NCBI GenBank assembly: GCA_964247055.1
Contig: OZ176056.1
Coordinates: 3,472,001 to 3,536,000 of the forward strand
From: Paragordius varius
Lineage: Eukaryota > Animalia > Nematomorpha
Length of the DNA stretch: 64,000 nucleotides
Reading direction: 5' to 3'
Part shown: positions 3,531 through 63,073 of the stretch, piece by piece
Numbering within the stretch: the stretch's first letter is position 1
Layout: each line of letters opens with the position of its first letter
Made by a program: the position numbers and the translations under genes
The notes under the pieces: generated by a model
What the model was told of the DNA's origin: nothing
The model's input: the letters and a program-made list of their open reading frames with translations, nothing else
The model's database searches: none

Positions 3531-6500
3531 AGCAAAAAATGATTTATTTTCAAATTTTCTATCTATCCAATAAATTAAGTTTGATACCTACCATTCAATT
3601 TACAGAAGATATATTATAAAACATAATCATTTATCTTTTTTTCATTCAAATTAATCTAATTGACCGAATTAAAGTTACCTAACACTTATTTTAATATATT
3701 TTAGCTTTATTGAAAATAATTTTTCCCTTGATGTATGCATAATTTATTATTTTTTAATTACGCTGGGCAACAAATTTTAGTACCATTAAACTTTGAAATT
3801 TATTTCATTAAAGTACATTTATAGATTATCTGAAAAAAATGGTCCAACACCTAAGAATTTTTTATTATTAGTGCTTATCTAATTGGCCCCGATTTAACAT
3901 CAAAATCGTTTTCTATATTAAGAGTTTTAGAAACAGAGCCACATATTTTATATCATTTGAAAAAGCGCACAAAACCGAAACTCTCGAATGGTTGTTAGTC
4001 ATTTATTTCAATCTGATGTAAAATTTATTTGGCTTTATGGATCAAAAATTTTCACCCTTATATAAGTCAAAAATTTTCAACCAACTAATATAAAGATCAT
4101 ATAAATTGGTTTAATATATTATTGGGTTTACATTAATATAAAATTAAAAATCTTTGAAAAAATTTTTGGTTTACTAGTTTAATAAAAATTATTATTAACA
4201 AAAATTATCTAGTGGATACTAAGATGCATAATTATAACTGTAAATTTATTACACAATGGCTATAAAAAAGAATACCTTAAACTATATTTCTAATCTTTAA
4301 AATTTTGAAAATGTCATCTAAAAGAAATGATAATATTGATATAATGGATTTTTTTAAGACCAAAAAAATAAAAATAGCTGTTTTGAATGACATAAAAGCA
4401 ATAATTGTGTTTTAATCTAAAAAACTTTATAAGGTCATTAAAAAAAGTTTAAGCTATTTTCAGCTATTAGTTTAAAAAATATAATTAAAAAACGCTCTCG
4501 CTTCGCAGGTTTGTCGCTTCCTATGTCCAATTAACTAGCGATTTAAAACATTTGTATGCATTTTGAGTTTTCATTACTCTTTCAAACGATATATTCCGAA
4601 TGGTAATTTATTGTAAATTTCCAACGAAAAATATTTTTTAGTTTTGATAAAGAGGCCCATAATCATAAAAATCATATTACACAAAATTTTTAGGTGGTAT
4701 TATAATTTTTATATCAGATTCACTCTTAAAATGATAACAATAATCAGAAATGCAAAAAACAAGTGGCAGAAAAATTTGTTGTCTAGCGTTATATATAACA
4801 TAACCTTGTTCTCTTTGGTATTTTTAATTAAACTTAATCTTCATTATAAACGGGAAATATTCTAAATGTGTCAAAAACTTTCAAACTTTTTTAAGACTGC
4901 GATTATAATCAGGGTAAATAGTGACCCCAGACTTTATTGATATTTTTAAAAAACTATAGAAAGAAACGGCTGTGATATAACTTTATGTTTCTAAATTAAT
5001 AAAAATTATATGTAAGCCGAAATACATATAATTTAGTTTTAAGAAAAAAGTTTAATATCAAACTACTTTGACGCCATTTTTATTTTACAACATTTTTGTA
5101 TATCGTGTTAATTTAATTCTAACGCTAAAATTATAGTTATATTTATTTAAATCCTATCTAACATTGATATAAACAGAAAAGTGCCTTTTTACATTATATA
5201 TTAGCTAATGCACACATGTCATATAAACTTAATTGTACCTGTTTATCCATAAAATAAGTAAACATCAAGTTTTTTTGATTATAACTTTATTAATTTTGGT
5301 AATCAATGTTTAAGTGCAAACTTTTGCAATGGTATATTTTTATATTCGATTTTAAACAACCCTGTGGTCCCCAAAGACCCCAATTTCAATCAGAAGATGT
5401 GATGAATGTGTTGTATCCACCCAAGTGTTAAAAAACATTTATTTGTGTTGTTAAGCCCTTAAAAACCACATAAATTTTATAATTGATAATTTAAAATAAC
5501 TGTTGAAGTTTGAGGGTAAAGGTTGAATCTGTGTAGCAGCTCATTGACGAATCTTTTTGGTTGTTTAATTTTTTTGATTACACACACACATACATATATA
5601 TATATTCACTGAATAGTCGATCATCCAATAATTTTTATTGGTAATTTTTGATATTACTTTAAATTTTTTCAGTCCGGAACTACCACTATTCTATAGAAAG
5701 TTGCGAAACCTCCATTTAAACGAGTTGTAGTCATTAAAAAACCTTAAAAGGCATGTCCAAAAAAATATATTTCATGTCTTAAGGGCCATTATGCAGATAA
5801 AATGTTTATAGCTGTTTGACAGATTTGCAGATATTTTAACGATATAAGTACCAAAAAATGCAATAAATAATTGCCATAAAAGAGGACTTTTATAGCCGCG
5901 TGGCATTTAATCCATAAAACCTTTAAACCATATTATTACTTTCTGCAAAAATTGGAGCCAAACAGTTTAAATTAATGTTTAAAAATTATTTTTTATCAGG
6001 TATTATCATTTAAATTAGTAAGGTGCTATCCAATGAAATTAAATATCAATTAAATCTTTTATTACGACTATCATTAACCCTACCCTATTTAGTAAAATTA
6101 TAAGGTTTTGCCCCTTTGACGGTAAAATTAAATATTTGTAATGTAAACGATGAGAAAATATAAAAACTAAGCAAGGATTATTATATCTCAAACAACTAAT
6201 TATTTAGTTTTATACAGCCTCGTTTTGACATATGAAAGTTAAAAAAAGATGAATACCTGCAAAAAAATTTAATTAAAGGTGTTTTCGGGATGCTAAATTT
6301 TTATATGGAAAGATATTGGAATGTTGGTTAGTTGTTAAGAAACTATTATTATAGATTATTAATCATTTTGGTTCGTGATTTAGGGTTTTTTAAATGGACC
6401 ATGCAAAAATGATATTAGTTTTTGCCGTAAAAATTTTACTCATGGCTGTTTTATACCAACCAAAAATATTTTTGGGATATTTTATCGAATAGTGGGTGAA

Positions 6501-8546
6501 AACGATGATGGCTTTGCAATTTCAGTGATTAAAACAGGCTTAAAACTTATTAAGCATTCACAATGTTTACTGTTGCTCATTAACACATCATTACCTCTCT
6601 TTTAGGGCTTTATCCCAGCGCGCAATTTTGTCAATAACAGTTTTAGAAGTTATTGTAAAAATTCAATTATCAAACGTTTTTCCTACGTATTATAAAAAGC
6701 TTATATTAGTTTTGTGAATTCTAGAGTTTAAAATTGGGACAGCTGCAAAACACAATTGAACCGACCAGCTGATATTAAAATCAAATGAATGCTTTTTAAA
6801 TTATTTACATTTCCTACATTTATTTTCCAGTTATATTAGCGATTAAAAAAATTTATACAAATTGCGGCAAAAACTTTGAGATGAAAATTTAAATTTATTA
6901 ATGCACCTTAGAAAGACTAAAAAAGCATAGTTTTAAATCTGGCTTAATGGCTTAAATACTTTTTTTAATCAAATTTCAAATCGTTATGGGAAATAAAAAT
7001 ACCTCAAAAGGTAATGGAGTGTTGAAACTCAGCAACCCTTTATAATTTGTTATGAATTATAATAAATTATTGTGGATGGACTTTGGAATTTTATGGGCTG
7101 ATGGATAGGGAAAGCAATGTTTAATGATGGAGAATAAACACTTAAAACTACAATGTTCCAAAAAAAGCAATTCGGCTCAATTTCATAATGTAAATTAAAT
7201 AAATGCATAAATCTTAAGTCTTTCTAGATAAATATTAAAAATTTTATTAAAAGTGCTGTGTCATTTAACTTTTGAGCCCTTATCGCTTTATAACTAATAC
7301 ATTATCAAAGCCGTTAAAAAATAATTATTTAGCAGATAAAAGTTTCAACAGTTTATTGCTTGTAAATCCGTAAAGATTGGAATTCGTTTTAAAAAAATAT
7401 ACCGCAAATACCTGGATCGGAACTATGACCCAATTATATACCATCTAAAGTGCTATTCATATACAGCTCAGAACAACGTGGGCTCCAAAATTTATGCCCA
7501 GCCCTACTAAATTTTTTCAATATAAAGGCAAATCAAATAATTCGAAAATATTATAAAACCATAACTATTTAACAATTGTGTTGATAAGACCAATCGCTAA
7601 CATATTTTTTAAATGATTAGATAAGTGGTCAGATAAATTTTATCTACATTCCTATGAATGTTGCCCTCCTATCATTTTTACTTTTGCTAGAAAAGAAATT
7701 GTCGCATAAATAATATTCCAAATTTGGCTCGTACATAATCCTACGCGGGAAATCAAATGAATAAATTTTTTAGCTTAATTTTTTTCATTAATTTTCATGA
7801 AAGACACGTTAAACTAAAAAGTATATTCAAAAAACTTATCACGTTTGAATTTAAAATTAGTTATCTGGTATTTATTTAATACAAAAGATATAACTAATAT
7901 GATTTAAAAAAGGATACACAACCACAATGGCTCCCCAAAGGGGTCAACGCCTTCCAAGAGGCGCGTAGAATTTAAAGAAGGCGCGAAAAATTTAAAAATT
8001 AAAAAATAAAACTACAGACAAATTGAAGGATTTCAAGTACGGATTAACAAGATTTGTCACCGATATGGAAAAAAAATATTTCATAAATTGCAGATACAAA
8101 GATCTCAATGATTGAACTTTTTAATTCTATAATATATTTTACAATTTATATCTTGGTTTTTTTATAAAAGGGAGCGCAAGAATTTTTATTTTCAATTTGG
8201 TGGGGCGTGTATGAAATAAGGTTGGTTACCACATTACAATTTAATAAGTTTAAATTCGATAAATATATCACGAAAAAGGTTTCAAGTATTTTATAAAATG
8301 GATGTACTGATTACTTTTAGAAACTACAACACAATTTAAACAATTAAGCCAACCATATTAAATGCGTTATCTTCAATTGAACTCAGTTTTTAATATAAAA
8401 AGTTTTTCCGTACAAATTAAACACAGAATGATGGTTAATAAATTTATTTATTAAACATCAATGCAAAATATAGGGGGTGTATTATTATTTATAAAAATCT
8501 AGGATGAATTGACTTGCAATACATTTCTTCCAGATCATGTGTCCCA

Positions 8547-11500
8547 TCAATTACCTGAAAAATTAAAAATATTAGCGGTATTAGTTATATATTTATATTT
8601 TTAAATTAAATTCTTAAAATTGATTAACTACAAATTATGTTTAAATACATATTTTTTTATAAGGCTTATTTCAAATTTGACGACAAAATAAGTAAAAACC
8701 AAATGACTTTTTTATAAATACCACCATATTACCTTAATTCTTCATAATAAAAAACCAATTATTTTGAGATTTATAAAAATTAATGTTTACTTTTAAAAAT
8801 TAGTCTTTTAGTTTTTACATTTGGTTTTAATATAATTTGATTAAATACTGTGTATAACAAATAATTTAGGTTTTAAATCATTTTCCCAAAATAAAATTAA
8901 ATGAATGATTTTTTTAGAATAAATTTTGCGACAAATAACTGTGTCTAACCGGGTTGTCCTGGCATACCATCTTCATCATTTCCTGGTAAACCGGGGTTGC
9001 CAGCACCCCATCCACCACCTAAAAAATATTTTTTTTAGTTATAATTTTTTACTATATACCTCGTTTTACAATAAGTTTTTATTTAATCTTTGTGGCAATA
9101 ACTTATCGAGAGATTTGGAAATTATTGTTTTTAATATTTCATTAACAATTATCAATATTAATTTTAAGTTTTTTTCTTATTTTGAATTGTTTTATGATCG
9201 CAATCAAATAGAAAGATTAAAGAAAAACTGGAATTTAGTTTGAAAATATTGGTTTTAGGTAATATTTAGGATTTTAATTTTAAACATTATTATCAAAATA
9301 ATGTTTAAAAATTTCTAACCAGGAGCTCCGGGCATACCAGCTCCTACATTACTTCCAGGGTTTCCTGGTAAACCGGGGCCACCTGCGCCCCATCCGCTAC
9401 CTAAAAAGCAAAGTTTAAACAAAGTTTAAAACCTATTAAAACTTAATATATACAGTCATGTATCCTTTATTTTAATAAAAATTTATTTTTTTCCGTTAAA
9501 TTGGTGTAAATATTTGGTAAAGAATGGAAAAAACAAGAGCTCTATGGTAATTCTTATACTTTTTTGATGTATATGATATTGTTTGTTAATACCATAGAGC
9601 TCTTGTTTTTTCCATTCACTAAATATTTATACCCAAACGAAAGAAATTTTTTTGAGAAAATAAAGGATACATGACTGTATATTAAAACTATATAAATCTT
9701 AATCATGTAAGAATATGTATCAATTTCTAAATATATTACATTTACAATGAACTAAAAGTCTAATTTTTATTCTTGTTATAAAAATAGATCAAAAATCTAT
9801 ATTCGCTGAATTTATATGCTAATAAAGGTATAATCGTAAATTTGAAATTCAAAAAATTGATTATTTAGGACAAGGAAAAATTGGAAAATAAAAATTATAT
9901 GTACCAGATGCACCAGGTTGGCCGGGATATCCGCCACCACCTCCTAAAAAAGAGTTTTTTTAATAATTCCAATTTTAAGATAATATTAAGCGATCTCGTG
10001 TTTTACTCTCCTTATTTTTGACTTGGTTAATATTTACATTTAAAATATTTAATATAAAACTTTCCAAAACTTATTTGTTTTGTATAATAATAATATTTTA
10101 AACAAATCAAATCTTTTGACACATACTGCAGTAAAAACTGAAATTATACAGACAAAAGGTGAAAATATAAAGACAAATATTTTTTTTATTAATAGACGAC
10201 CATACTTTTTAAATCTAGATTTATATCAATATAACTCATTGTTTAAATGGAGAGTGTGTGAAATAGAGATATATAATACTTATACAATCAATTTTATATT
10301 TTAATTTTGTAGGTAAATAGCTTATAATGAGAATAAAGTAAAGTATGGTAAAAATTTGTCTTTATATTTTCAACTTTTGTCCGTATAATCTCTATTTCAT
10401 AAAAAGTCAGAAGATATTTATTTATATACTTGCATAATCAATTAAATTAAAATTGAATTGTTTGCAAAATCCTTTTAGAAATCTTTTTCAAAAATTTAAA
10501 TACTAATTTTTTTACTATAACTGATTAACTTGTTGCATATTATGAAATAGATATGTGCATATTTGTACAATCAATTATGAATTTTATCTGCGAAAATAAA
10601 AAAAATATTTAAATATAATACCAGGAGCTCCGGGTTGACCAGAACTTCCGCCATAACCCCCACCATTTCCTCCTAAAAATATAAAAAATATAAAATATAA
10701 TTTTCAATCTTGATTAATTAAGAATTACAGCGAAAATTGAAATTATACAGACGAAACGTTAAAACAAAGCAAAATATTTTTTTTCAAAAGGATTAAATTT
10801 ATAGAAATATGTCTTTTAAATATAACTTAATGTTTATTGCAAGATATGTCTTTTAAATATAACTCAATGTTTATTGCATGTATGAAATATAAATGTAAAT
10901 TACAGTAACGCAATTATTATTTTCCAAATTAATAGCAAAAACCATTTAAAAAGTATATAGTAAAAAAAATATTTGTTCCAAATGTTTTTAAGTGTTTTGC
11001 CGCCTGTATAATTTCAATTTTTACTGTTAAAGATGCGACTACTATTAGAGATTTCAATAATTTAATTCAGATTAGAATACAGTAAATTAGCAGAATATAC
11101 CATAACAATTAGAATTAAATTAAAACAATATCTTAACCGTCCGATTAATGTAAGTTTTGTAAATATAACAATTTTTTCCCATTTTTAACATACAGATTTT
11201 GCATAGTAAGTAAGTGGATAATTAAGTAAAAACAAATACTCAAAATCATTGGCTTAATATTTTATACGCTATATTGCATTTTTTTCTGAATTTAAATAAT
11301 GGATTATTTAAGCTTAACAAATTAAAAGCATATATGATATTCTGGTTTTTAGGATTATCAATATATTTCGTTACGAATAATATATGATTGATCGTTTCTA
11401 TTATGGTAACCACTTTACGTTTTTGAATAAAAATGTGCAACTCATGAATTTGGTTAAGCGCTAGAATATTAAAAAACCATTTTTGGATAATATATATATA

Positions 11501-13710
11501 TATATAAAGAACTCACAATCAAAATACGTCTCAAAAGGTTGCAACTTAAACCATAACCCTGCTTTTAACAATGCACGTCAAAAGTCAACCAGATTCAATT
11601 AATTTTTTTTCCTCAAAACTTTAAAATAAATGAGTTTTTTTTTGGGTTGCAAAAAATGAATGAAAAATATGAAAATTTACCAGGAGCTCCAGGTTGGCCA
11701 GAACTTCCGCCATAACCCCCACCACTTCCTCCTAAAAAATATAAAAATAAAATTTTTAATTTTGATTGATTAAGAATTACAGTAAAAATTGAAATTATAC
11801 AGACGAAACGTTAAAACAAGGCAAAATATTTTTTATTCAAAAAAGGTTTAAATTTATAGAAATAAATTTTTTAAATATAACTCAATGTTAATTGCAAGTA
11901 TGAAATACAAATGTAAATTAGTAACGCAATTATTATCATCTACCAAACAAATAATCCATATAGCAAAAACCAAGATTTAAAAAGTATATAGTTAAAAAAA
12001 TATTTGTTCTCTATGTTTTTAAGTAATTTGCCGCTCTGTATAGTTTCAATTTTTACCGTTAAAGATGCGACTACTGTTAGATATTTTAGGCTATTCAATC
12101 ATAAATTCAATCAGATATATGAATAGAGTCAATTATCAGTACATACCCTAACAATTAGAATTATATCAAAACAAAATGTTAACTAATGTAGGTTTTGTAA
12201 ATATAACAATTTTTTCCCATTTTTAACATACAGATTTTGCATAGTAAGTAAGTGGATAATTAAGTAAAAACAAATACTCAAAATCATTGGCTTAATATTT
12301 TATACGCTATATTGCATTTTTTTCTGATTTTAAATAATGGATTATTTGAGCTAACAAATTCAAAGCATATATGATATTTTGTTGTTTAGGATTATCCATA
12401 TGTTTCGTAACGAATAATATATGAATCGTTTCTATTATTATGGTAACTATTTTACATTTTTTAAATTAAAAAATGCAACTCATGAATTTGGCTAATCGTT
12501 AGAATACTAAAATATCATTTTTGGAGAATATATATATATATATATATAACTAAAGAACTCGTAATCAAAATAGACCTCAAAAGGTTGCAAAACTTAAATC
12601 ATAACCGTTGTTTTAACATTGCACGTCAAAAGTCAACCAGTGTCAATTACTTATTTCCTGCAAAACTTTAATTTTGCGTTAAGGAAAATGAATAAAAGAT
12701 ATATGAAATTTTACCAGGGGCTCCAGGTCGGCCAGAATTCCTACCACCTCCTCCACCACCACCTATCCAATAAAATTATTTTCATAAAATTTAGAAAATA
12801 TTGAAAGACCATTTTCTCTTAAATAGGTTTATAAACATATTTCTAATCTTTATTCGGGGCCCCTTTAAAAATTCGGCTTAATTGTTTTCATAGATAACTG
12901 ACTTTATTGGTTATTTTGGTAATTATAAATTTTAGATATTATTTTATTTACGTGTATGATAAATTATGTTAAATTCAACTTGCTCTCAAAATTTATATAA
13001 TAACAACAAAAACTAAAGTTAAAGCACTGTAATATTAAAACAAAATCTTTACCTGTTTTTAATAACCTATCGTTTTAAGTTGGAAATAGGCATACAGATG
13101 TGATTTAAATTTATTTATAACAACTGTAATTATATAAATTTTAGAATGATATGAATTAATATACAATAAAAAATATTAGTCTTAAATTAAATTATATTTT
13201 GTCTTTTCACTGAAATTAAAACTTTAAAAAATTTAAAATAAAAAATAAAAAACCTCCACCACGTCCGGGTTGACCAGGCTGACCGGGTTGACCTCCAGCA
13301 CCGCCTATAAAGTTTTTATTAAAATTTTTGATTTTTGAAAAAAATAATAAAAATTTATCTCAAAATATATCTATAAATTTTACAGTAATTATTGAAATTA
13401 TATGGCAATACGTAAAAATATAAAGACGAATTTTTTTCAAAAGATAACCATAGTTTTTTACACCTTAATTTATCTGATAAAAAATACAATTGTAAAACAC
13501 ATATACTGGAATTTATACTTTGCAATTTAAAACAATGATTTAGTTAAAAATCAAAATTTAAGTATGGTTGTCTTTTATAAAAAATATTTATCATTATATT
13601 TTTATGAATTGTCAGTTTAATTTTTACTGTAATTCAATTAAATATTTACCATAACTAAGGATAGAGGTAATGCATAAAACAAGCAAAGTTAATAAAGCGA
13701 TAATTTTCAT
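8547..13710 (-). CDS. Secreted Gly/Pro-rich low-complexity protein (elastomer/cuticle-like), 9 exons, 152 aa
   Basis: Exons (minus) 13710-13650, 13304-13254, 12762-12715, 11731-11681, 10672-10622, 9943-9905, 9400-9320, 9018-8950, 8554-8547. All introns are GT-AG phase 1 and the total is 459 nt, in frame. Protein: MKIIALLTLLVLCITSILSY (signal-peptide-like) GGAGGQPGQPGQPGRGG GGGGGGGRNSGRPGAP GGSGGGYGGSSGQPGAP GGNGGGYGGSSGQPGAP GGGGGYPGQPGAS GSGWGAGGPGLPGNPGSNVGAGMPGAP GGGWGAGNPGLPGNDEDGMPGQP GN*. Exons are GC-rich islands in AT-rich DNA. Confidence 0.85.
9453..9677. mobile_element. Tc1/mariner-type MITE (near-perfect hairpin)
   Basis: TA-CAGTCATGTATCCTTTATT ... AATAAAGGATACATGACTG-TA with about 100-bp imperfect inverted arms (inner arms GAATGGAAAAAACAAGAGCTCTATGGTA / TACCATAGAGCTCTTGTTTTTTCCATTC) and TA flanks. 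Confidence 0.85.
10622..12762 (-). repeat. Tandem duplication of an about 1.05-kb exon+intron unit
   Basis: Introns 10673-11680 and 11732-12714 align along most of their length, including the same MITE-like motif. The exons at 10622 and 11681 are near-identical 51-mers. Confidence 0.9.
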
Positions 13711-16039
13711 TATCAAAAGTTGTCGAAAAAAGTTATAAAAAGTTAATAATTAATTTATTCAAAAATTGTCGTCCAATTTATACTTTTCAAATTTGCATCA
13801 TCATTTATAATAGATTATCTTTATATTTCACAAATCCAATAAAAATGGGCCCTTGGGTGTCAAAACATAACATATAGTTTAATAATTTAGTTTTTTGGAT
13901 GTTTATAATTACGTAATAATTACAAGAATTATTATAAAGAAGAATATTTTTTTTGCATCATATAGTTGCGTTGTTTTATCATAAAAAACATTCTTTTAAT
14001 TTATAAAAAAGTGAGGACAATACAAAGTTCCAGGAATTTTATAAAACTTTATAATCTCAGATAAGATTAGTCACATCAAAAAGATAAAAATTTTAAAGTT
14101 ATGTCGTCAAATAAATCATAATGATGAAATATTACAATCATTTAGACAAAAAATAAGTTAAATACTAATAAAATATTATATTGATATTTAGTTATCCGTA
14201 AAAATTAAAAAAACAACCTTTTTTCTCATACCTTAAAAAAATTGAATCAAAATTATTATTATAATTATAAAATTATTAACACTTCGTGACTTTTTAATTT
14301 TTTAAAGTCAATTGTATTTTAGGAGCAAGTTTTTACTTGTAATATCATTATTGTGAAAAAACTATTTATCAAACATGTTTTTTTACATATGCGGATTCTA
14401 AACATATAATTTACACTTTATTTTGAATTTTTGTGAATAACTTAAAATCCGATTAAATTAAGCCATTAAATCAAAAAATTTTCTGCTTCTTGAGTTAATT
14501 ATTTACATTTAACCATATACTCATTTATTTTCCCATAGTGTTACCGATTTTAAATCAGTCAAAAAAATGGCGGATAAAATTTTGAAATGAAGACTTTTCT
14601 CTAAATCAAGTAAATAAAAAATTGCAATCTGCGCCTAAAAACCTGCATAAAATCTGGCCAGATATCTAAATACTCTTTAAAATTAATTTCGCTTTGGGTG
14701 CAAAACTACCCCAGAAAGAAATAAACTTCATATAAGAATTTCAACAACGGCATATAAATCGGTAAATCATAGATCAGCTGATCGCAATAAGTTGTTATCA
14801 TGCATTGTTTCTTAAGCCTAACTTAAAGTAAAATATCAGTAATCATATTTAAAACATTTAATAAAATCATCCTAAATACAAATCAGGTTTAATTTCAAAA
14901 TCAATAAGAATTCGATTTATAACTTGCGACTCCGGGCAATTATAATAATAAAGGGAGCTACCAAATTTATGTTTTGCTTATCTATATTAAATAATAAAAG
15001 TATACCAAAATATATAATAAAATTATGTTGGAAAAAAAAGCCTTTTGTGTTATGCAATTTTTATCGTGTTGGTAGATTATACGGGTAAAATTCAAGTTGC
15101 ATCTTTATAATCACATTTAACATTTATTGTGCCAAAAATAGTTAATTATCTAGCTCATGCGCCCCTATCTTGTCTAAGATTTTGCCAACAGATTTATTTA
15201 CGAAATAGAATTATCAATTCATTTTTGATTAATAATTTTTATATTTAAGTGCATCAATGTTATATCAATGCAAACTTTTGAAATGGTTTGTATTCATTTT
15301 ATATTTCATAAAATATTTGATTTAAAACAGGGCGTCGACATCGAAAAAGCATGTGGATATCATTAAAGTTTTAAACATGTATTTCGAAGTTATATATGTT
15401 ACCCATACGAAACAGAAATACATTAGCTATATTCCGAAACCAGGGGCCTAAAAAAACCAAATTTACAGTGAAAATGGATTACACAGTTTTTTAATCATAA
15501 ATTAAACCGTTAAATTTTATATTCTTCCCAAAAACAGCGTGCTTCGCTACAGTTATTTTCAAAATAAATGCTTAATAATTTTGTCAGCAAGGCGTCTAAT
15601 TTTATAAATTATGAAATATATCACTACAGAACACAGTAAATATTGAAAATAAAGGCGTTTATATTAATAAATCTATATATTTATAAAAATGGAAAATGCT
15701 GGCTTTGTGATCTGGTACAGGAAAACGGGTAGACCCAATCAAATCCAAACATCGAAAAAATATAATCATTAATGAATGCCCCGACAATAGCTTCGCCCTT
15801 TTTTTGAATTAGGTCCCCAGTAGGGGCCCACCCCGTGTAAAAACGTTTTTTTCGAAAAAAGAAGTCCACAAAAATCGTGTCTTTGAGACTTCCAGAGAAC
15901 GTGTTTGACCAATTTCAAATATGATTTTCTTAATCGATTGCGCGGAACATAGTCGGCTCGCTTTTTTGATTAAGGCCCTCTTTTTACCCGCTCCCTCCGT
16001 AAAATGCCATATTTTTTAAAAAACAAAGTCCACAAAAAT

Positions 16040-17571: not shown

Positions 17572-20500
17572 TTATTTGCAACCAACATTAATCATAACTT
17601 TGATTGCATTATTTTTTGCATTATCCCGGGCAGTTTCATAGGCCTTTACGGAATCTTCGAAGGGGAACGTGTGCGTTATAAAAAGTTTTGTTAATTTTTC
17701 CAAATTTAACGGTGTCCGTTCCAACAATTCTACCGTTTGAGGAAAACTAATATGGAATAAAGTAGATAAAAAATGAAAAATTTTATAATACATATTTGTG
17801 TAGATTGCTGAATAATTAATCATATAATTGTAAGATCTTAATAAAGAAAGTGATAATCGCTTTTAAAAACTTACTTTACAGATAAAATTATAGTATATTT
17901 TCTTATCATACGTAATTAATTATATGTATGACTATAATAGCAAATTAAATATTAAAATCACATTAATCAAAATAATATCTATAATTGATGAATAATGAAA
18001 TCTATACTTTAAAAATCAATAAAATTAAAAGCACCCAATCGATTACACATGATCTAACACCAATATGAATGTGAAAATACTGTTTTGACTTTTCAAATAT
18101 ATAATTGATTTTTTATAGAGTATTATTCAAAATAACCATAAACTAATGTGTTAAATCAATAATGTATGAATAATAATAAATTTAAAGGCTCTTTTTAATA
18201 AACCAATATTAACCATTAAATTCTTACACTGTTAATTATCACCCATTTAAATAATAATCCAATATAATCTTATAATCGATAATAAATTTATTTTTTATAT
18301 ATTCAACTGCAAATTATTATAATTATCCATCTAAAAACTTTTTTAAAATCCTTTTTTAAAATTCTATCATAACCAAGAAACAAACTACCAAATTGTATAT
18401 GTAAACTGATTTCTAATATAGGTCCAAAATTAAAAGCAAAACACTAATGTAAAATTAACCGAAAATTATAAAGTTAAACAATATAAACTAATAACTATCG
18501 TCAATATTTTAATTAATGTTGAAGTTTAAAAATTGTTAGTAAATAATTAAAACTATAAAAAAAACAAAACCAAAATAATTTAAAAACGGCCATACTTTAA
18601 TCTTAATATTCACTATATAACCTAAACGATTAAAATGGGGAAATTATATTTGAGTGTGTTAACAATTTACATAACTATTCTATATTTCGCAACTTAAAAT
18701 ATATACCATTTACAATTCTAATTCATCCTTGAACAATTCAAATTCACCCTAAAAATAAATTATGTGTCGGGATAATATAACATATTATAAAATGAATATT
18801 TTTAAGACATAGAGCATTATATTAATTTTTAACAGAATTTCATATTTAAAAATATTTTGTTTTTAATCTGAAAAAACACATAATTTATTTTAGGATGAAT
18901 TTGAATTGTTTGTGGGTGAATTCGAATTGTTTAAGGGTAAAATTGAACTGTAAATATATGTAAAAAAAGAAAAGGTTCTTTAAAAAAACATATCTTTTTC
19001 GTTTTCTCTTCATAATATCTATTTTTCCTGTTAAAAACTTTAAAAAACTCACCAATTTGCGTAACGAAAAACGCCCATGATATCAATTTGTTTTGCCAAA
19101 ACTTGACCGAAATTAACTGGGGTGGGGTGCAAACCAAAACCTATACATACCATTTTACTCCCAGGTTGAAGTACCTGTTTAAAAATATATATTCAGATAT
19201 TTTGAGTTAAATTTAAATAAGCAAAAATGAATTTATTAATTAAAACAATTAATATAATTATAATTGATTAAATTTAAATTGATAAATTGAAATTCATTAT
19301 AATTTTATATTTTTGGTAAATATAAAGGTTTTCAGCTTTTTTTTAGTATCGAGATCTAATTCCAAAAACATTTATTAAAACTGCTAATACAAATGAATCA
19401 AAACGCAAATTTTATGCTACATTTACAATAAGAATCCGTAAAAATTTTTTTTTCCAAAAATTTTTTTATTGTTAAAATTTATAGAATATTTTAAAATATA
19501 TGTTATTAAATGTGTAAAAATAAACTTGTAAGGCTAAATCAACCCCAGTTAGGGAACCAGTAGCTTCAAAACATACGTGAGGGCGATTGTCGCAATTTTC
19601 TGGTGACAAAATATGGCTAACTAAATCAGAATTATTTGAAGTATTTGTAATGGTGTTTTCCTCAACTGAAGCCGTAAAAATTTCTTTGAAATGAATCAAA
19701 TTAATATTATTTTTTTGAGGAGTATTTTCTGTTTTTGGCAGTAAAATTATTTGATAAGCGTGATGGACACCCAAAGCTTTTGCAGTTTTAAGCCGACTTT
19801 CAACAATATCTAAAAGCGAAAATTCAAAATTTTTTATTTTTTATAGATTAAAAAAAATGTGAATTAAAACATTTCTTATTTTGTTATAACGACAATAAAT
19901 ACTTGAAAGTATTCCATTCTTTTTAATAATAATAAAATCCATAAAAATTCATTTAAAATATTTTTTCTTATCCAGTTTTTGACATTTTTATCAGTTTGCA
20001 TTTGGTTTTGATAAGATATAGATATTAAATAGGCAAATCTACAAAATTAATATATTTATTATCTTTACTGCTATATACATATGTCAAAATATGTTAATTT
20101 TTTTAACAATTATATAAAAAACCATATTAATAATAAATAAATTTTTATAACATGCTTTTATTATCTATAAAATTGAAGATATTTCGCATTTCATTTTATA
20201 AAAACCAAGTCAAATATTTTAAACACCATTTATTTTTTTAATAATTGCCAACATTGATGATAATGCCTGGCAGGATCGCAAATATTAAAGGCAGCTTCTA
20301 TACGGATACAACACAAAAACGATACATTATAACTTTTCAAAAAATTTTATTTTATAAAAGCTTTAAAAACCATTTTACTAAACTAACCATCTTTTAAAAA
20401 AAAACTTTTTTGAACTTTTTCAAAAAATAATCTACCAGTTATAACGATATTTTTGGCGCCCATACTTAGGGCACAAACGGCGCAAGCTAGACCTATGGGA

Positions 20501-23500
20501 CCAGCCCCCGATATTAAGACATTGGGTGAATTTATGTAAGAAAACTGAGCCCGACTAAATGCATAAACAGCCACAGTTAAGGGTTCAATCAAAGCACCCA
20601 ATTGTAAGGATATACGTTGCGGTAATCTAAAAGCAAATGTTAAGTTGTAAAAGTTTTATAAAGGTGATAAAGAACTATTTCTAAATATTATAAATTATAA
20701 TTTATTATATTAACATTCATAGCCAATATATATTTAACTAATATAATGCGATATTCATTACTTTCAAATATATATATCTGTAAAAAATTAAAAAATTGGA
20801 GAAAAGGTTTCATTTTATTTAGCTTTTTGGGATACTTTTCTGCTTGAGACTGATTTCAAATTTAAAAATAATATAGCTTTTGATGCGATTGATTCAATTT
20901 TTTCTTAATGTAAAATTTTAATAAATCCTCCCCTGAAAACTTTTTTCATTTCATTCTTGAGATTTATAAATATAGAACAGGCATATATATTTATATGATT
21001 AAAAACGAAAATAAAGTTAAATTATTTAAATATAATTCGGCAGAAAATTTTTGATATTTAAGTATATTAACATTAGGTGTTTGGTTATAGGAAATATAAA
21101 ATTATAAGCTTTCAATACAGGAAAATAGGTTTGATAATTAAATTTTAACCAATACAACTCTAAATCACATTATTTAACGAATTTCTCTGGGGTAAAAAAC
21201 TACCCAATATTTAATAGTGTACAAAAAAATTAAGAGTTTCAAATGTAATATGAATAAAGACAATTTAAAATAAAATTAATTTTTTCGGTTAATTTTTTTA
21301 AATAAAAATTTTAGGTGATCATAATATTATTTGGCTGTAAAAGGCAATAATGTAAAGAATTCATTTGGTGGTAAACTGTATAATTTTTTAGTTTTTGTAA
21401 TGCGTCATAACCTAAAGTGCTGGAATAAATCTATTTTTCTTCTAAATTCCAATGTTTTTATCATGTAATATGACACAAAATCGATTGTCAATTCTGTAAT
21501 TTTTAACTTTCACACATTGAAAGTCTGAGCTAGAATCTTTTGAGATTGTGTAATTTATGATACAATATATTTTTAGTTTCGTATAAACCTTTCACACATT
21601 GAAAGTCTGAGCTAGAATCTTTTGAGATTGTGTAATTTATGATACAATATATTTTTAGTTTCGTATAAACCTTTATTAATAAAAAAGTGTTTAAAGTATA
21701 TAACACAATTAGGTAATTAACCTAAATCATTTTCTATTCTCAACAATACTTAAATATTTATAAAATTATTTTACAAACTCTATATATAGATTTAAAACGA
21801 ACATTCACAAAAATTTATTATATACCTTTTTATATCCCTAAAACGGATCACTAAATATATATAATAAATGAAAAAAGATTTTCTCCTAATCACAAATGTA
21901 AATTCAAACATTTCTAACCTAATTATAATTTATACATGACCCTTAAATTTTAAAATCCTTGTTTCAATATAAATCAAAAATTTGACATATATTTTACTTG
22001 TAACAAAAATCAGAAGGGTGAACAAAATATTTTCGTAATGTGCCATCAACAGGGGGTGTCGCATGGAATTTTATGGTTGGACATAAATTGTAGCGTCCCG
22101 AACGACATTGGTGACAAAAACGACAAGGTATACCAGGTTCAATACAAACTTTATCGCCTAAAAGAAGGAAAATGTATGGAAAGAAAAAAATTGAAATATA
22201 GCGAAAAAATTAAGATTTAATCTTTAGTAACAAACAAATTTTATGATTTTTCACGGGTACATGATTATAAAAGTGAAATAACCTGAAGGTATATAAAAAA
22301 TTCAATGAAAATATAGTTTTCTTATGTCTTTAAAAATGAGAAATTTTATTATTCTGTATTTATTCAATTTTACTGTTAATATTCGTTCAAATGTTTGGTT
22401 TTTTTATATTTCCAATTTAAGGAATTTTTAGTGCTCCTAACAGTTCATGAACTTTTCACTTTTTGTCCGCGATGACACTTTGGGATAGTGTTATATCCCA
22501 GTGCTCAATTTTGTAAATAAACAACTGTTTTGAAAGTTAGTTTAAGTAAAATTTATTTATCAAACATTGTTCTTCTGTTTTAATAAAAAAGCTTATATTT
22601 TTTATAGTTTTGTGACTTCTAACGCCTAAAATGGGGACAGTCACACCTAATAAAATCAATATATAGAGTTTTTGCTGGTAAACATGAAAGCTTTATAAAG
22701 TTAATTATTTACACCTGTTGCATGTGCGATTCAAAAAAAATTAAAGAAAAAAAAGCAAAAGATGGAGATGTGGATTTTTTTGACTTTACTTGGTAAGAAT
22801 TAATATATGCGCCTAAAAGGCCTTATGAATACACATCTTCAAATTCGGCTTTATACCTTAAATACTATTTAAAGTATTCTTTTAAATCGCTCTGGCATAT
22901 AAAATCCAAAATCTCATAGAGTATTAAAGTGGAAGAGTCCTTGTGCAATTTGCACTTTATTAAACTTTTACTTACGCAAAAACTAGTTTATTGATCGATA
23001 TTAGAGTAAAAGTAGAAAGACAAAGTTAGCTAGTAGCCAAAAAATACTAAAGCTCCTTATATATTTAACACTATTTAAGGTTTTAAAACAGTTTTAACCA
23101 AAATACATATAGCAAAACTCTCATAAATTTTTACTAATATTGATTTAATTTCGATAACTATATTAACACAAAACTAACAATGTATTAAATTAAAAAGACG
23201 AAAAAAATTTTAAATAAAATAAAGTTAACAAAAAACGTTAAATAAATTTACCAATTTGAAGTGGATTTTTAAGATTAGAGCCGAGTTTAACAACCACGCC
23301 GCTGGTTTCATGTCCCATGATCATAGGTTCATGCAGGATAAAATCACCGCATCTACCCTCAAGCCAATAATGAACATCTGAACCGCAAATTCCGACATAT
23401 GCAGTTTCTATCAACACTTCATTTTCCCCAGGTTTTGGAACTGACACATCTTGCTATAGTAAGCATTAAATTTAAGGAAATGTAATGAATTGTTTTAGAT

Positions 23501-58875: not shown

Positions 58876-58887
58876 TCTCCCACCTTT
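58876..58887 (-). other. Polypurine tract
   Basis: Minus strand AAAGGTGGGAGA immediately 5' of the 3' LTR. Confidence 0.85.
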
Positions 58888-61800
58888 AATAAGAAAGACG
58901 ATCCGGAGCTTTTCGTTCCCGGCGAGGATAACGGCTTTGTACTTCTGTCAAGTTACACTCCGATTCCACAGCTTCCGTAACTGGGATCTCTGGTACAATG
59001 TCAAGGACGGGTTGTGACATAACAGACTTCTGTAGCTGATCGGCGTGTTTTCGCTGAATTTTGCTACCGTCATCAGTCTTGTAAGATAATAATCCTGTTC
59101 TTTCAATTACTTTTCCTTTCCGCCACCCCTCTGCTGTTTCATTTTTAATCAGAATAGCATCATCAACGTCAAATTCTCGTAAGGGGGCTCTAGTATTATC
59201 CGTAAAATCTGATGGTATTGTCTTTAACCATGACAAGGGACCTAACAATTCTCTTTTTAGGAATAATATGCACGGTGTTGCTCTCGTTGCACTATGAATT
59301 GCTTGCCGATAGCTTCACAAATGGTATTCATTGCTTCTTGCGGAGAGATGTCAGCCCTCTTCGTAGCTTTATATTTAGTTTTCAATGTGTAAATAGATCT
59401 TTCTACCAACCCATTCGTTCGTGGGTGATACGGACTCGACGTAACATGTTTGTTGTTTAAGTGTTTAAGCCTTTCATCAAAATCGTGCGATACAAAATAC
59501 GATGCATTATCACTTACTATCATTTTAGGAAAACCATATCTCGCAAACAATTGTTCTAAGCAATTTAAAACAGACCTGCTCGTAACTTGTTTCAATAAAT
59601 TAACTTCCAGCCATCTGGACGAGCTGTCAATTGTTACCAGCCAGTAGAAATTATCAATGGGACCAGTAATATCTATGTGTATTCTTTCCCAGACGGCGGT
59701 GTTGAAATTCCATTTGTATGTTGGGTTTTCCTGGACATTGGGCTTGTATCTTTGACATGAGTCACATGTCTTCGCAAGCAATTCAATACTTTGGTCCAAG
59801 CCTGGCCAATATACACTGTGGCGCGCAAGGGACTTATCCCTGGGTGTCCAGTGTGAAAGTAGTTTAGGACTTCATTTTGCATGGATCTCAGGAACAATGA
59901 GTCTATCCTCCAAATAAACTAAACCATACGATGCTTGGATAGCGTTGCGATGTGATTGATAATTTTTTAGATCTGGATTATCCCAATTGTTGGAATTTAA
60001 TGCAATTTTTAATTTTTTTATCACCGGGTCCTTATTGGACTGAACTAATACATTTTTTTTATTAATGTTTAAATCGTTCATAGATAAGAACCGAATTTTT
60101 TCAGCTACAGCATGATCATCATCTATTTCAGAATCGTCAATTGCTAATCTTGATAGGGGATCAGCTAAATTTTGAACCCCTTTATTGAAATGAATGGTAT
60201 AATCATACCCCGATATTTTATAAATCCAACGTAATAATTTTATACTAGTGACTCCGGTTAAGTTCCGGTCTTCCCCAAATAATTTAATCAGTGGTTTATG
60301 ATCAGTCAATATTTTAAAAGATCTCCCATATATGAAAGGGTGAAATTTTTTTACCGCGAACAAAATCGCCTTGGCCTCTCTTTCGATCGTCGAATAATGT
60401 TTTTCAGAATTTAAACATTTCCTGGATGCGAAAGAGATTGGCCGCTTGCCATCTTCGGTTACATGGAAAAGGATGGCACCCAAACCTTCGTTTAAAGCAT
60501 CGGTCTCAATCAATAATGGCAATTGCGGATTGTACGGAATCAGTTCCACAAAATTTGCTATTAGTTGTTTTGACAGTGCAAATTGTTTATCATGAATATT
60601 CTCCCATTTCCATGGCATTTTGTTTCCAGTTAAAGTGTGCAGATCACTTATGACTGAATGTAATCTTAGAATAAATATTTCATGAAAGTTTAATAGTCCT
60701 AAAAAGGACCGTAATGTTGTTTTGTCCTTTGGAACAGGACATTTCAAAATAGCCTTGATTTTTTCATCCGTTGGCTTAATACCTCTTTTAGATATTTCGT
60801 ATCCCATGTAGGATACTTTTTCCTGGAAGAATTTCATTTTATCCGGTTGCAAACGGAATCCGGCCTGTTCAAGTTTCTCCAACACATGCTCAAGATTTGC
60901 TTTGTGTTGAGTGTCTGTATTGCCGGTTACCAGAACATCATCCAGATAAGCACAAACGCCTGTGCAATCATCCAGAATTCGATCCATAACTCGTTGAAAT
61001 ATCATTGGAGCATTTGTGAGCCCGAAAGGTAATCGTTTATAAGTAAAGTAACCTCTGTGTGTTGTAATTGTCAGAATATTAGAGCATTCTTTATCAACCG
61101 GTAGTTGTAAGTAGGCATCCTTGAGATCCAAAACTAAAAATGAATGTCCATTTCCGATTTTACCCAATAATTGATCAAATGTCGGAATGATATGAGAATC
61201 TTTTGATAGATAAGGATTGATTGTGACACGAAAATCGGCGCATATACGAGCCTCCCCATTGGATTTCAACACGTTGACCGTTGGGGTTGCCCAAGATATC
61301 TCAGTTGTTGTTGGGTCTATTGGTTCTATAATCCCCAAATCTAACAATCTATTCAATTCATTTTCTACCAATGGTTGCAATGGTAGAGGAACTCTACGGC
61401 ATGGAAAAGCTTTTGGTTTTGCATCCGGTGTCAAAAAAAAATTTTTCGGATTGCCGTTGTAACAACCAAGTTCCTTTGAGAATAGTTTTGGAAATATTTT
61501 GGTCAGCTCCATCTTCTCATTAGAATTTATATTATTGATTACACCTTTTGGAAAAGGTAGCTTGTACGCTTTTATCCAAGGTAATCCAAAAATTGGATCA
61601 AAATTGCTTTTAGTTACGATACATGGTAACGTTTTCTTTTCATTGTACAACGTCACAGTGACCATAGTTTTCCCTAAGATTGTTATCTTATTATTATCAT
61701 ACGTGGTTATTTGATCGGACCACGTTAACTTAGGGCTACTGATCTGCTTCCATATTTGTTGACTTATGGGACAGCAGTCAGCACCGGTATCGAAAATCAT

Positions 61801-62704
61801 ATCTATCATATTATTGTTGATCTTCACTTTTATTTTAGGGGTAGTGCCCGCTTTTATAGATCTAATTTGATCTAAATTTCTCACCAACTTTGTTTTGCAC
61901 ATTGAACTAAAGTGGTTGTTTTTGTTGCAATAGTAGCACGTTTTGCCCCAAGCTGGACACTTGATGCAGTGATCCACAATTTCAGCAATTTACTTTAGTA
62001 TCATTATTATCCCGGACATCATTATTCTTATAGTTTTTATAATTATTATTGTTATAATGGCTCTTGTTAAAACTTCCATGAGGTTTTACATTTCTGGATT
62101 TATCCACTTTAAGCTTATTGATTTGCGAGGGAAGATTATCGGCTTCCTCAAAACTTAAAGCCATATCGACCAACATTTGTAGTGTCAGTGGTTTGTCATC
62201 TAACTTACCGAGCGGATATTTTATGTGGAGTTCTCTTTCTAATCTGGGTTGATTTAATCCAATCAAAAATATATCCCTGATTTTGTTAGAAATGTCCGAA
62301 TCAAATCCAGAATTGTCGGCCAAAATTTTCAAACGTTCTAAATACGAAAGAATAGATTCATTATCACCACGACGAATACGATAAAATGCACATCTATTCA
62401 CCCATAGACTTTTGTCTGGGGCATAGATTTGAACTGCAATTTTATAGATTTCCGGCCATTCCAAATCTTCGATGGTATCAGGATATAGAATATTTTCAAT
62501 TTTGTTCAAAATTTTAATACCACCGAAAGCTAAAAATAATTTTTTTATATTGGAATCCGTGACAGGAATATCCCTGGCCGCAAGTACCCTTTCTATGTGC
62601 CTGACATAATTTTTGAAATTGTAACATTCCTCAAATGGTTCAAGAATTATTCGATTTAGAGGATTTTGTGCATTACTAAATGATGTATCTCCGGGATTTT
62701 CCAT
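58886..62704 (-). pseudogene. Disrupted gag-pol of the LTR element
   Basis: Gag starts at about 62704 (MENPGD). A TGA at 61982-61984 lies within a C-x-x-C knuckle and is followed by a frameshift. Further frameshifts at about 59880 and 59830 (integrase HHCC region) and about 59330 (plus a stop). PR-RT-RH stays open for 701 aa. Confidence 0.9.
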
Positions 62705-62724
62705 TAGGCAGAATAAATTTTTTT

Positions 62725-62734
62725 CTCGTCGCCA
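62725..62734 (-). other. Primer-binding site, probably tRNA-Ser(GCU)
   Basis: Minus strand TGGCGACGAG, 2 nt downstream of the 5' LTR, complementary to the ...CUCGUCGCCA 3' end known for eukaryotic tRNA-Ser(GCU); 10-nt match only. Confidence 0.75.
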
Positions 62735-62736
62735 AA

Positions 62737-63073
62737 TAATATCAGTTGGGTATAATTTATTATAACACAATAATGGGAAAACACAGTAATGCAATGGACT
62801 TAAAGAAGTTGTTGTTTATATAGGTTATATTTAATTCCGAGAAATGTATACGGATCTTATTATATATTTTTATCGTGCATTAACATATACAAATTTCTGA
62901 GAATGATGAGTGTGCATTTATAAAACAGTCACGTAGTCTAAAACTTGTCACGTAGTATATAACATGTCACGTTAAATATTAATAACAGAAAAGTATTATA
63001 AGTATGCATTGAATAGCAAAGTAATATATAAAATAGAGTTATGTTTTGTTGCATATTATATAACATCATATCA
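62737..63073 (-). repeat. 5' LTR (337 bp)
   Basis: Direct repeat of 58538-58873; its inner terminus reads TA instead of CA. Confidence 0.95.

Follow-up and report, generated by a model that had tools for sequence, protein, structure and literature searches.

A 64-kb window of the Paragordius varius assembly (contig OZ176056.1, positions 3,472,001–3,536,000 of the forward strand; 'the window' throughout) carries a small minus-strand gene in which a signal-peptide exon is followed by seven small exons that together encode a Gly/Pro-rich protein. Gene coordinates are given in the plus-strand numbering of this 64-kb window, so that the first exon (E1) has the highest numbers and the last (E8) the lowest. 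A first-pass annotation, made from the letters alone, had described a signal exon and seven symmetric exons of 39–81 nucleotides (nt), and the sequence bears this out: all exons are in phase 1 and the joined E1–E8 frame stays open for 151 codons (151 amino acids (aa)). We hold it somewhat better than an even bet that the gene is single-copy and restricted to the lineage of this very AT-rich animal, and that its small, secreted, non-globular Gly/Pro protein would act as a component of a matrix or coating.

The first exon (E1, 13650–13710, minus strand, 61 nt) begins with an ATG at 13708–13710, the first in its open frame and preceded by an in-frame stop 13 codons upstream, and codes for MKIIALLTLLVLCITSILSY plus the opening base of a Gly codon; a GTAAAT donor follows its phase-1 end. 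The resulting MKIIALLTLLVLCITSILSY-G has the make-up of a signal peptide, with Lys in the n-region, 16 hydrophobic residues as the core and small residues (ILS/SYG) in the c-region. It is followed on the same strand by E2 (13254–13304, 51 nt, GGAGGQPGQPGQPGRGG), which has the unusual donor GTTTTT; E3 (12715–12762, 48 nt, GGGGGGGRNSGRPGAP); E4 (11681–11731, 51 nt, GGSGGGYGGSSGQPGAP), which with its upstream intron is the tandem twin of E5 (10622–10672, 51 nt, GGNGGGYGGSSGQPGAP); E6 (9905–9943, 39 nt, GGGGGYPGQPGAS); E7 (9320–9400, 81 nt, GSGWGAGGPGLPGNPGSNVGAGMPGAP), with the donor GTTAGA; and E8 (8945–9018, GGGWGAGNPGLPGNDEDGMPGQP(G)), a sister of E7. Exons E2 to E7 each begin and end in phase 1, every internal exon is preceded by a T-rich tract and AG and followed by GT, and the introns measure 301–1008 nt. 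The seven exons after E1, which encode 17, 16, 17, 17, 13, 27 and 23 residues, all have lengths that are multiples of three, for which the chance expectation, boundaries given, is (1/3)^7 = 4.6e-4. Four donors of the gene read GTAA(A/T)T, as do those of two short introns in a collagen locus of the same genome.

For E8, two ends can be drawn. If the exon is read through, the letters GGT TAG at 8945–8950 close the frame with a TAG stop at 8945–8947; alternatively, a GTTAGA donor (8950), the same hexamer as the donor of E7, would leave an exon of 69 nt (8950–9018) and splice to an acceptor near 8556, adding Asn and a stop. The latter route would lead into a putative terminal exon with 3′ untranslated region (UTR) at 8430–8556 on the minus strand, read from the letters as ttttcag at about 8557 followed by GT AAT TGA; the candidate 3′ UTR carries AATAAATAAA at about 8431–8440. 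As read from the sequence, the choice of end alters the product by at most one residue, and the protein would terminate in ...GQPG(N) either way. The exons also escape the open reading frame (ORF) track, as had been claimed for most of them: ORFs of at least 55 aa on the coding strand cover none.

Modules and composition of the predicted protein

The mature part of the protein comprises about 131 aa (10.9 kDa; isoelectric point (pI) 6.1; grand average of hydropathy (GRAVY) −0.83), of which 48.9% are Gly, 15.3% Pro, 6.9% Ala, 6.9% Ser, 5.3% Gln and 4.6% Asn. Three acidic residues (Asp/Glu) are balanced by three Arg, and there are three Tyr, two Trp, two Leu and one Val; Lys is absent, and so is Cys, whose sole occurrence is in the signal peptide, in keeping with the Cys-free mature region noted at first reading. 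The earlier view that no globular domain is present is very probably right too; Pfam is empty on each exon, and the entire mature sequence is Gly/Pro low complexity. A gene for a predicted secreted, non-globular Gly/Pro-rich protein is well supported by the sequence.

Each exon encodes one module, in which a Gly-rich head precedes two to four collagen-type triplets that form the tail. Heads of the form GG(Y/W)G had been proposed for all modules; a single Tyr or Trp is indeed found in five of the seven heads, those of E4–E8 (GGGYG, GGGGYP, GSGWG and GGGWG), while the heads of E2 and E3 have no aromatic residue. Similarly, the proposed GQP/GAP/GLP/GMP tails are correct as G-X-P triplets and too narrow as a list, since N, R, Y and G also occur as X and the tail of E6 closes with GAS. 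A tail of the form ...G(Q/R)PGA(P/S) is common to E3–E6. All 20 prolines of the protein stand in the context G-X-P-G, an arrangement matched by none of 200,000 shuffled sequences, with Q in the X position seven times, A four times, L, N and M twice each, and R, Y and G once each.

Glycine recurs with a period of three (lag-3 autocorrelation z = 4.8), and the triplet register is broken often. Typical runs comprise two to four G-X-P triplets, and the longest run of Gly-X-Y extends over eight triplets and is largely poly-Gly, which bears out the earlier statement that the Gly-X-Pro stretches are too short for a collagen helix. This periodicity, together with a Gly content of about 49% and with GLP, GAP, GNP, GMP and GQP triplets that are those of the genome's true collagens, could also be read as a fold in which Gly-X-X triplets form bundled polyproline-II helices, or as a protein that docks onto collagen through its G-X-P tails. 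The snow-flea antifreeze protein is such a polyproline-II bundle of Gly-X-X triplets, stabilized by disulfides. We regard a fold or docking role of this kind as extremely unlikely here, given that the register breaks every two to eight triplets, that the residue lengths of the exons keep no register and that the Cys needed for bundle disulfides are absent.

A disordered chain fits the composition better in our reading. The combined measure 2P + G is 0.79 for the mature part; work cited second-hand here credits a high combined Pro and Gly content with keeping elastin-like proteins elastic, and self-assembling elastomers including elastin in a hydrated, disordered state instead of a folded or amyloid one (Rauscher et al. 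2006, cited in PMC5703643). On this model, E1 would provide a cleavable signal peptide, and each of the seven phase-1 exons would contribute one module of a Gly-rich head and two to four G-X-P triplets. In the resulting near-neutral chain of about 11 kDa, interruptions would be too frequent for a collagen triple helix and the Pro and Gly content too high for sheets or helices; the chain would stay hydrated and disordered, possibly as part of an extracellular matrix or coating in the cuticle, the egg string or the larval cyst. Its few Tyr and Trp may serve for adhesion or cross-linking.

The X-Pro-Gly sites of the chain might also be modified. X-Pro-Gly is the substrate context of prolyl 4-hydroxylase (P4H), and P4H alpha genes are encoded in the genome. 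Matches to the P4H alpha N-terminal domain lie at G000:C5:2513665-2521115 and C5:3225504-3225638 and suggest at least two to three genes, two of them close together. Since the genome holds these genes as well as true collagens with like triplets, hydroxylation of the X-Pro-Gly sites is possible.

If expressed, the product would be a compact natural disordered protein, about half Gly, with all of its Pro in G-X-P-G and one module per exon. It would be worth seeking by proteomics in the cuticle, egg strings or cysts of hairworms; taken alone, the locus is a small orphan gene of low complexity.

Coding constraint and duplication history

Several features of the locus bear on whether these exons form a maintained coding gene. 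The window contains 20 GC islands, and the only ones that code for Gly/Pro are these seven exons, all on one strand and all behind the signal exon; a finer GC scan of 8300–14300 added no exon-like island from introns or flanking DNA. GC content by codon position in E2–E8 is 0.80/0.81/0.23, compared with 16–23% in the introns and about 25% in the window. The high GC at positions one and two and the genome-level value at position three indicate that third positions are relaxed and the first two held.

Comparisons between sister exons point in the same direction. Among the codons aligned between E7 and E8, 11 are identical, six differ only synonymously and six are replaced, with one in-frame gap of four codons. 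The younger-looking pair E4/E5 matches at 48 of 51 nt, with two synonymous changes, one Ser/Asn replacement and zero indels, and synonymous-only codons likewise outnumber replacements between E3 and E4 (six versus four) and between E6 and E5 (seven versus two). Every indel between sister exons comprises whole codons. Pooled over the pairs, which are not independent of one another, 21 synonymous-only codons stand against 13 replacements (binomial p = 6e-4 against an expectation of 1:2). Because the Gly/Pro islands, the exon lengths, the GC by codon position and the sister-exon patterns agree, we conclude with good but not complete confidence that selection has maintained this coding gene.

The exons also retain the record of how the gene grew. 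On the minus strand, 10622–12714 is made up of two units in tandem, each about 1.05 kb long and consisting of an upstream intron and a 51-nt exon (E4 and E5). Alignment of their introns gives 88.3% identity and 117 gap columns, and the similarity ends just past the exon, downstream of which identity falls to 45%, the random level. E7 and E8 are older sister exons (repeat family D14). As judged from these alignments, the gene has expanded by tandem duplication of intron-plus-exon units, a history that remains readable in the present sequence. Repeated duplication of this kind would have come first, and inflation of the introns by miniature inverted-repeat transposable elements (MITEs) later.

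Two kinds of element lie in the introns. Intron 6, between E6 and E7, contains a palindromic MITE, about 235 nt long (9448–9682; inverted pairs I2 and I4), of a very abundant family with thousands of copies, which gave 3791 first-look candidates in a DNA search of the species' own genome, the scored copies being 84–89% identical and spread over most large contigs. Intron 5 contains an element of about 260–300 nt with terminal inverted repeats (TIRs) (10135–10397; family D5; pairs I1, I5 and I6), and related copies are found in intron 4 (10727–11027) and intron 3 (11779–12059). The TIR element, with the inverted repeats ACAGTAAAAAYTGAAATTATACAGAC, occurs at a few further sites in the genome, often adjoining copies of the 9448–9682 MITE family. 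Intron length is thus explained in part by transposon insertions. The introns are at least ten times longer than the roughly 22–26-nt introns of a collagen locus in the same genome. That locus is a cuticle-type collagen gene (L019, G000:C3:11971708-11974722) with introns of just 22–26 nt, for example GTAATTTTTCAAATATTATATAAAG.

Several points weigh against a maintained gene for a matrix or coating protein. Four of the eight donors deviate from GTAA(A/T)T (GTTTTT, GTATTA, GTACAT and, in two places, GTTAGA). The strong 3-nt periodicity is partly automatic in any sequence rich in GGN and CCN codons, for which reason the sister-exon comparison weighs more. In that comparison, the synonymous excess loses significance (p = 0.09) when just the two strictly independent exon pairs are counted, and the E4/E5 exons do not differ significantly from their introns in divergence (3/51 versus 110/937, Fisher p = 0.26). 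A search of sequencing runs listed four DNA-type runs of the same organism and one of a relative, in which 35% of the sampled words occur; in five possible RNA runs almost none of these words occur, as would be expected with exons of 39–81 nt in a query of 5.5 kb. Just three Tyr and no Lys leave the protein a small capacity for cross-linking. Lastly, the functional reading has composition as its one source: of the structural biomaterial proposed by the first-pass annotation, the gene for a secreted Gly/Pro protein is supported and the structural-material role, drawn from composition, is plausible.

Some of the same observations could mean that the gene does not work as modelled, being either a silent or decaying relic or a set of exons that belong to several transcripts or have other boundaries. 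The near absence of sampled words from the possible RNA runs would agree with this, as would several weak donors, introns at least ten times longer than the 22–25-nt ones seen elsewhere in the genome and the absence of an E7-bearing protein among 1.84 billion representatives that include gene calls from public assemblies. Such a library, however, finds a spliced eukaryotic product only if it has previously been annotated or assembled. A relic is also hard to square with an unbroken frame across eight exons and phase 1 at all boundaries, with 80% GC at codon positions one and two and 23% at position three in a genome of 25% GC, and with sister exons that differ by in-frame indels only and show an excess of synonymous differences. 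We therefore consider a gene that fails to work as modelled unlikely, and continue with the reading of a maintained gene for a secreted matrix or coating protein.

Searches for relatives and other loci of the genome

The queries available for relatives are exon-sized (at most 27 residues) or DNA and are of low complexity, which makes them weak tests of kinship. Searched against the species' own 110.6-Mb genome, the signal exon and the E7 peptide each returned this locus only, and the DNA of 8900–13200 returned this locus and MITEs only, with no similarity to collagen loci. Among simple patterns in the same 110.6 Mb, GWGAG occurred here and at four unrelated sites, while an acceptor followed by poly-GGN was no commoner than the control and matched mainly poly-G. 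Matches to PGAPG proved to be true collagens and were rejected as paralogues; those to GGYGG were no commoner than the control, and their loci are other Gly/Tyr-rich genes that lack G-X-P tails.

Beyond the genome, Pfam searches with exons and exon open frames yielded no family, and among 1.84 billion representative proteins the E7 open frame had a single chance match, to an unrelated repeat protein. Metagenome contigs scanned for the exact pattern of the E7/E8 core gave no match, a result that carries little weight. A literature search of limited reach returned no paper on micro-exon genes of this kind in Nematomorpha. The first-pass annotation had suggested tracing paralogues through the signal exon, and had named kinship with a collagen or cuticle family as evidence against its view; no paralogue appeared in the 110.6-Mb genome, and Pfam gave no such kinship at the level of the exons. 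Its claim of lineage specificity agrees with the absence of a relative from genome, Pfam and protein library, and is tempered by the short, low-complexity queries (at most 27 aa). Annotations based on ORFs, and many based on homology, would overlook such genes.

Two other Gly-rich loci came to light. About 205 kb away, a gene with larger exons (L043, G000:C7:3690.3-3691.0 kb) encodes Gly/Tyr/Asn repeats of the GGNYGGGYGGNNYGGGYGSGGYG type; it was rejected as a paralogue by its motif, which has no Pro tails. On another contig, Gly/Tyr-rich exons (GGAYGGYGGYGGGGGGGGGYGGYG) lie beside Cys-containing exons (L049/L050, G000:C8:756-759 kb) and make up a candidate secreted Gly-rich protein.

The window itself also carries a Slit-like gene with leucine-rich repeats and EGF modules, a MYND/SMYD-like gene and, at 58886–62794 on the minus strand, a Ty3/gypsy-type retrotransposon with long frames for a gag-like protein, for protease, reverse transcriptase and RNase H (701 aa) and for integrase. 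Exons of an alcohol-dehydrogenase-type gene lie at 23238–23447 and 20383–20601, both on the minus strand (Pfam ADH_N, E = 3.9e-13). This gene shares the strand of the Gly/Pro gene, whose start codon lies about 6.7 kb downstream of it, and no link in function between the two is apparent.

Elsewhere in the assembly, on a mitochondrial contig (L070, G000:C44:5980-10320), some perfect palindromes have arms of 131 or 97 nt, and other palindromes, about 50 nt long, are arrayed in tandem; the repeats lie at its positions 53–314, 773–1472 and 4064–4257, and its COX1 gene (L070:1501-2841) is uninterrupted. Long mitochondrial inverted repeats that spare COX1 have been described as exclusive to Nematomorpha (PMC10380579), and the pattern on this contig matches that description. 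A COX1 piece gave thousands of matches, at 79% identity or less. In base composition, the hairworm Gordionus montsenyensis has 26.93% GC, and the gastrotrich Lepidodermella was rejected as a source for its genome of 43% GC. Published hairworm genomes are put at 200–300 Mb, which speaks against a hairworm for an assembly of 110.6 Mb; on balance a hairworm is likely. A COX1-like fragment with several stops on a nuclear contig (L071, G000:C1:10612280-10612597) probably derives from mitochondrial DNA copied into the nucleus.

Comparison with known systems

Schistosome micro-exon genes (MEGs) consist of a signal exon followed by symmetric exons of 3–81 bp, typically about 15 bp long and 10–20 in number, separated by introns of 0.1–5 kb. 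Their products are small and secreted, have no known domains and are missed by automatic annotation, and the genes are described as restricted to Schistosomatidae. The present gene has the same architecture, with a signal exon, short symmetric exons of 39–81 nt and introns of 301–1008 nt, and similarly encodes a small, predicted-secreted product without known domains that annotation has overlooked. It differs from MEGs in that their exons are mostly smaller and more numerous and their proteins are not Gly/Pro repeats, and in that MEGs have proven alternative splicing and proven secretion, whereas here secretion is predicted and alternative splicing conjectural. By analogy, the gene might encode a secreted protein of the parasite–host interface, whose symmetric exons are skipped in many combinations to present variants to the defences of an insect host. 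The organism is probably a parasitoid hairworm, which would suit this idea. The modules, however, are nearly interchangeable in composition, such that skipping would change length more than identity, and MEGs are described as specific to Schistosomatidae, so that the likeness would be convergent; we judge a MEG-type interface role improbable.

Nematodes, the sister phylum, offer a second comparison in their epidermal neuropeptide-like protein (NLP) and caenacin (CNC) peptides. A Gly- and aromatic-rich host-defence peptide precursor akin in kind to these would share the signal peptide, the high Gly content and the scattered Tyr and Trp flanked by Gly (GGYG/GGWG contexts). NLP and CNC peptides are rich in Gly and aromatic residues, basic and typified by YGGWG/YGGYG (PMC6780910). 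In contrast, the present protein is neutral (pI 6.1; three Arg versus three acidic residues), has one aromatic residue per module and is Pro-rich, with 20 collagen-type G-X-P triplets that NLP/CNC peptides lack. It is also longer, its 131 aa being long for the class, and has no dibasic cleavage sites. Identity with NLP/caenacin peptides was rejected on the missing aromatic-G-G-aromatic-G motif and on the charge balance, and we see a host-defence precursor as very unlikely, the matrix or coating protein remaining our preferred reading.

The likeness to collagen lies in the 20 G-X-P triplets, whose Pro always precedes Gly and whose GQP, GAP, GLP, GNP and GMP forms recur in true collagens of this genome; the latter are many and include nematode-type cuticle collagens. 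Collagen identity (PF01391) was nevertheless rejected, since the longest run has eight triplets and no exon matches Pfam, and so was a nematode-type cuticle collagen, given a mature part without Cys, without an N- or C-terminal non-collagen domain and without a Pfam match. Resilin and other arthropod elastomers are similar in their Gly-rich repeats, in the single Tyr next to G-A-P or G-Q-P (GGYGGSSGQPGAPGG), in the signal peptide and in predicted disorder; resilin repeats contain YGAP. The present gene differs from resilin and cuticle proteins in being single copy with only three Tyr and no detectable homology, and a resilin or Rebers–Riddiford cuticle protein was rejected because neither the Rebers–Riddiford chitin-binding domain nor any other Pfam domain is found exon by exon.

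Finally, the parallel with elastin drawn by the first-pass annotation stands at the level of gene design: in tropoelastin all splice sites are of phase 1:1, so that any exon can be removed without a frameshift (PMC12554196), and all seven internal exons here are of phase 1-1. Tropoelastin identity itself was rejected on the zero Lys and the missing hydrophobic domains: unlike tropoelastin, the hairworm protein lacks both VPGVG-type hydrophobic domains (one Val, two Leu) and cross-linking exons of the Lys-Ala or Lys-Pro kind, and it is hydrophilic (GRAVY −0.83), ten times shorter, non-vertebrate and without sequence homology. The two are alike in being rich in Pro and Gly, with recurrent P-G dipeptides, one module per exon and no globular domain. 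That the composition might be tuned through exon skipping, as the same annotation suggested, is a conjecture. Following from it, and as a long shot, we postulate that phase-1 Gly/Pro micro-exon genes of this type could be an invertebrate counterpart of elastin, in which a secreted disordered elastomer has its length and stickiness set for each stage by cassette skipping of near-equivalent exons; if so, tunable materials of the hairworm cuticle, egg string or cyst would be made from one small gene.

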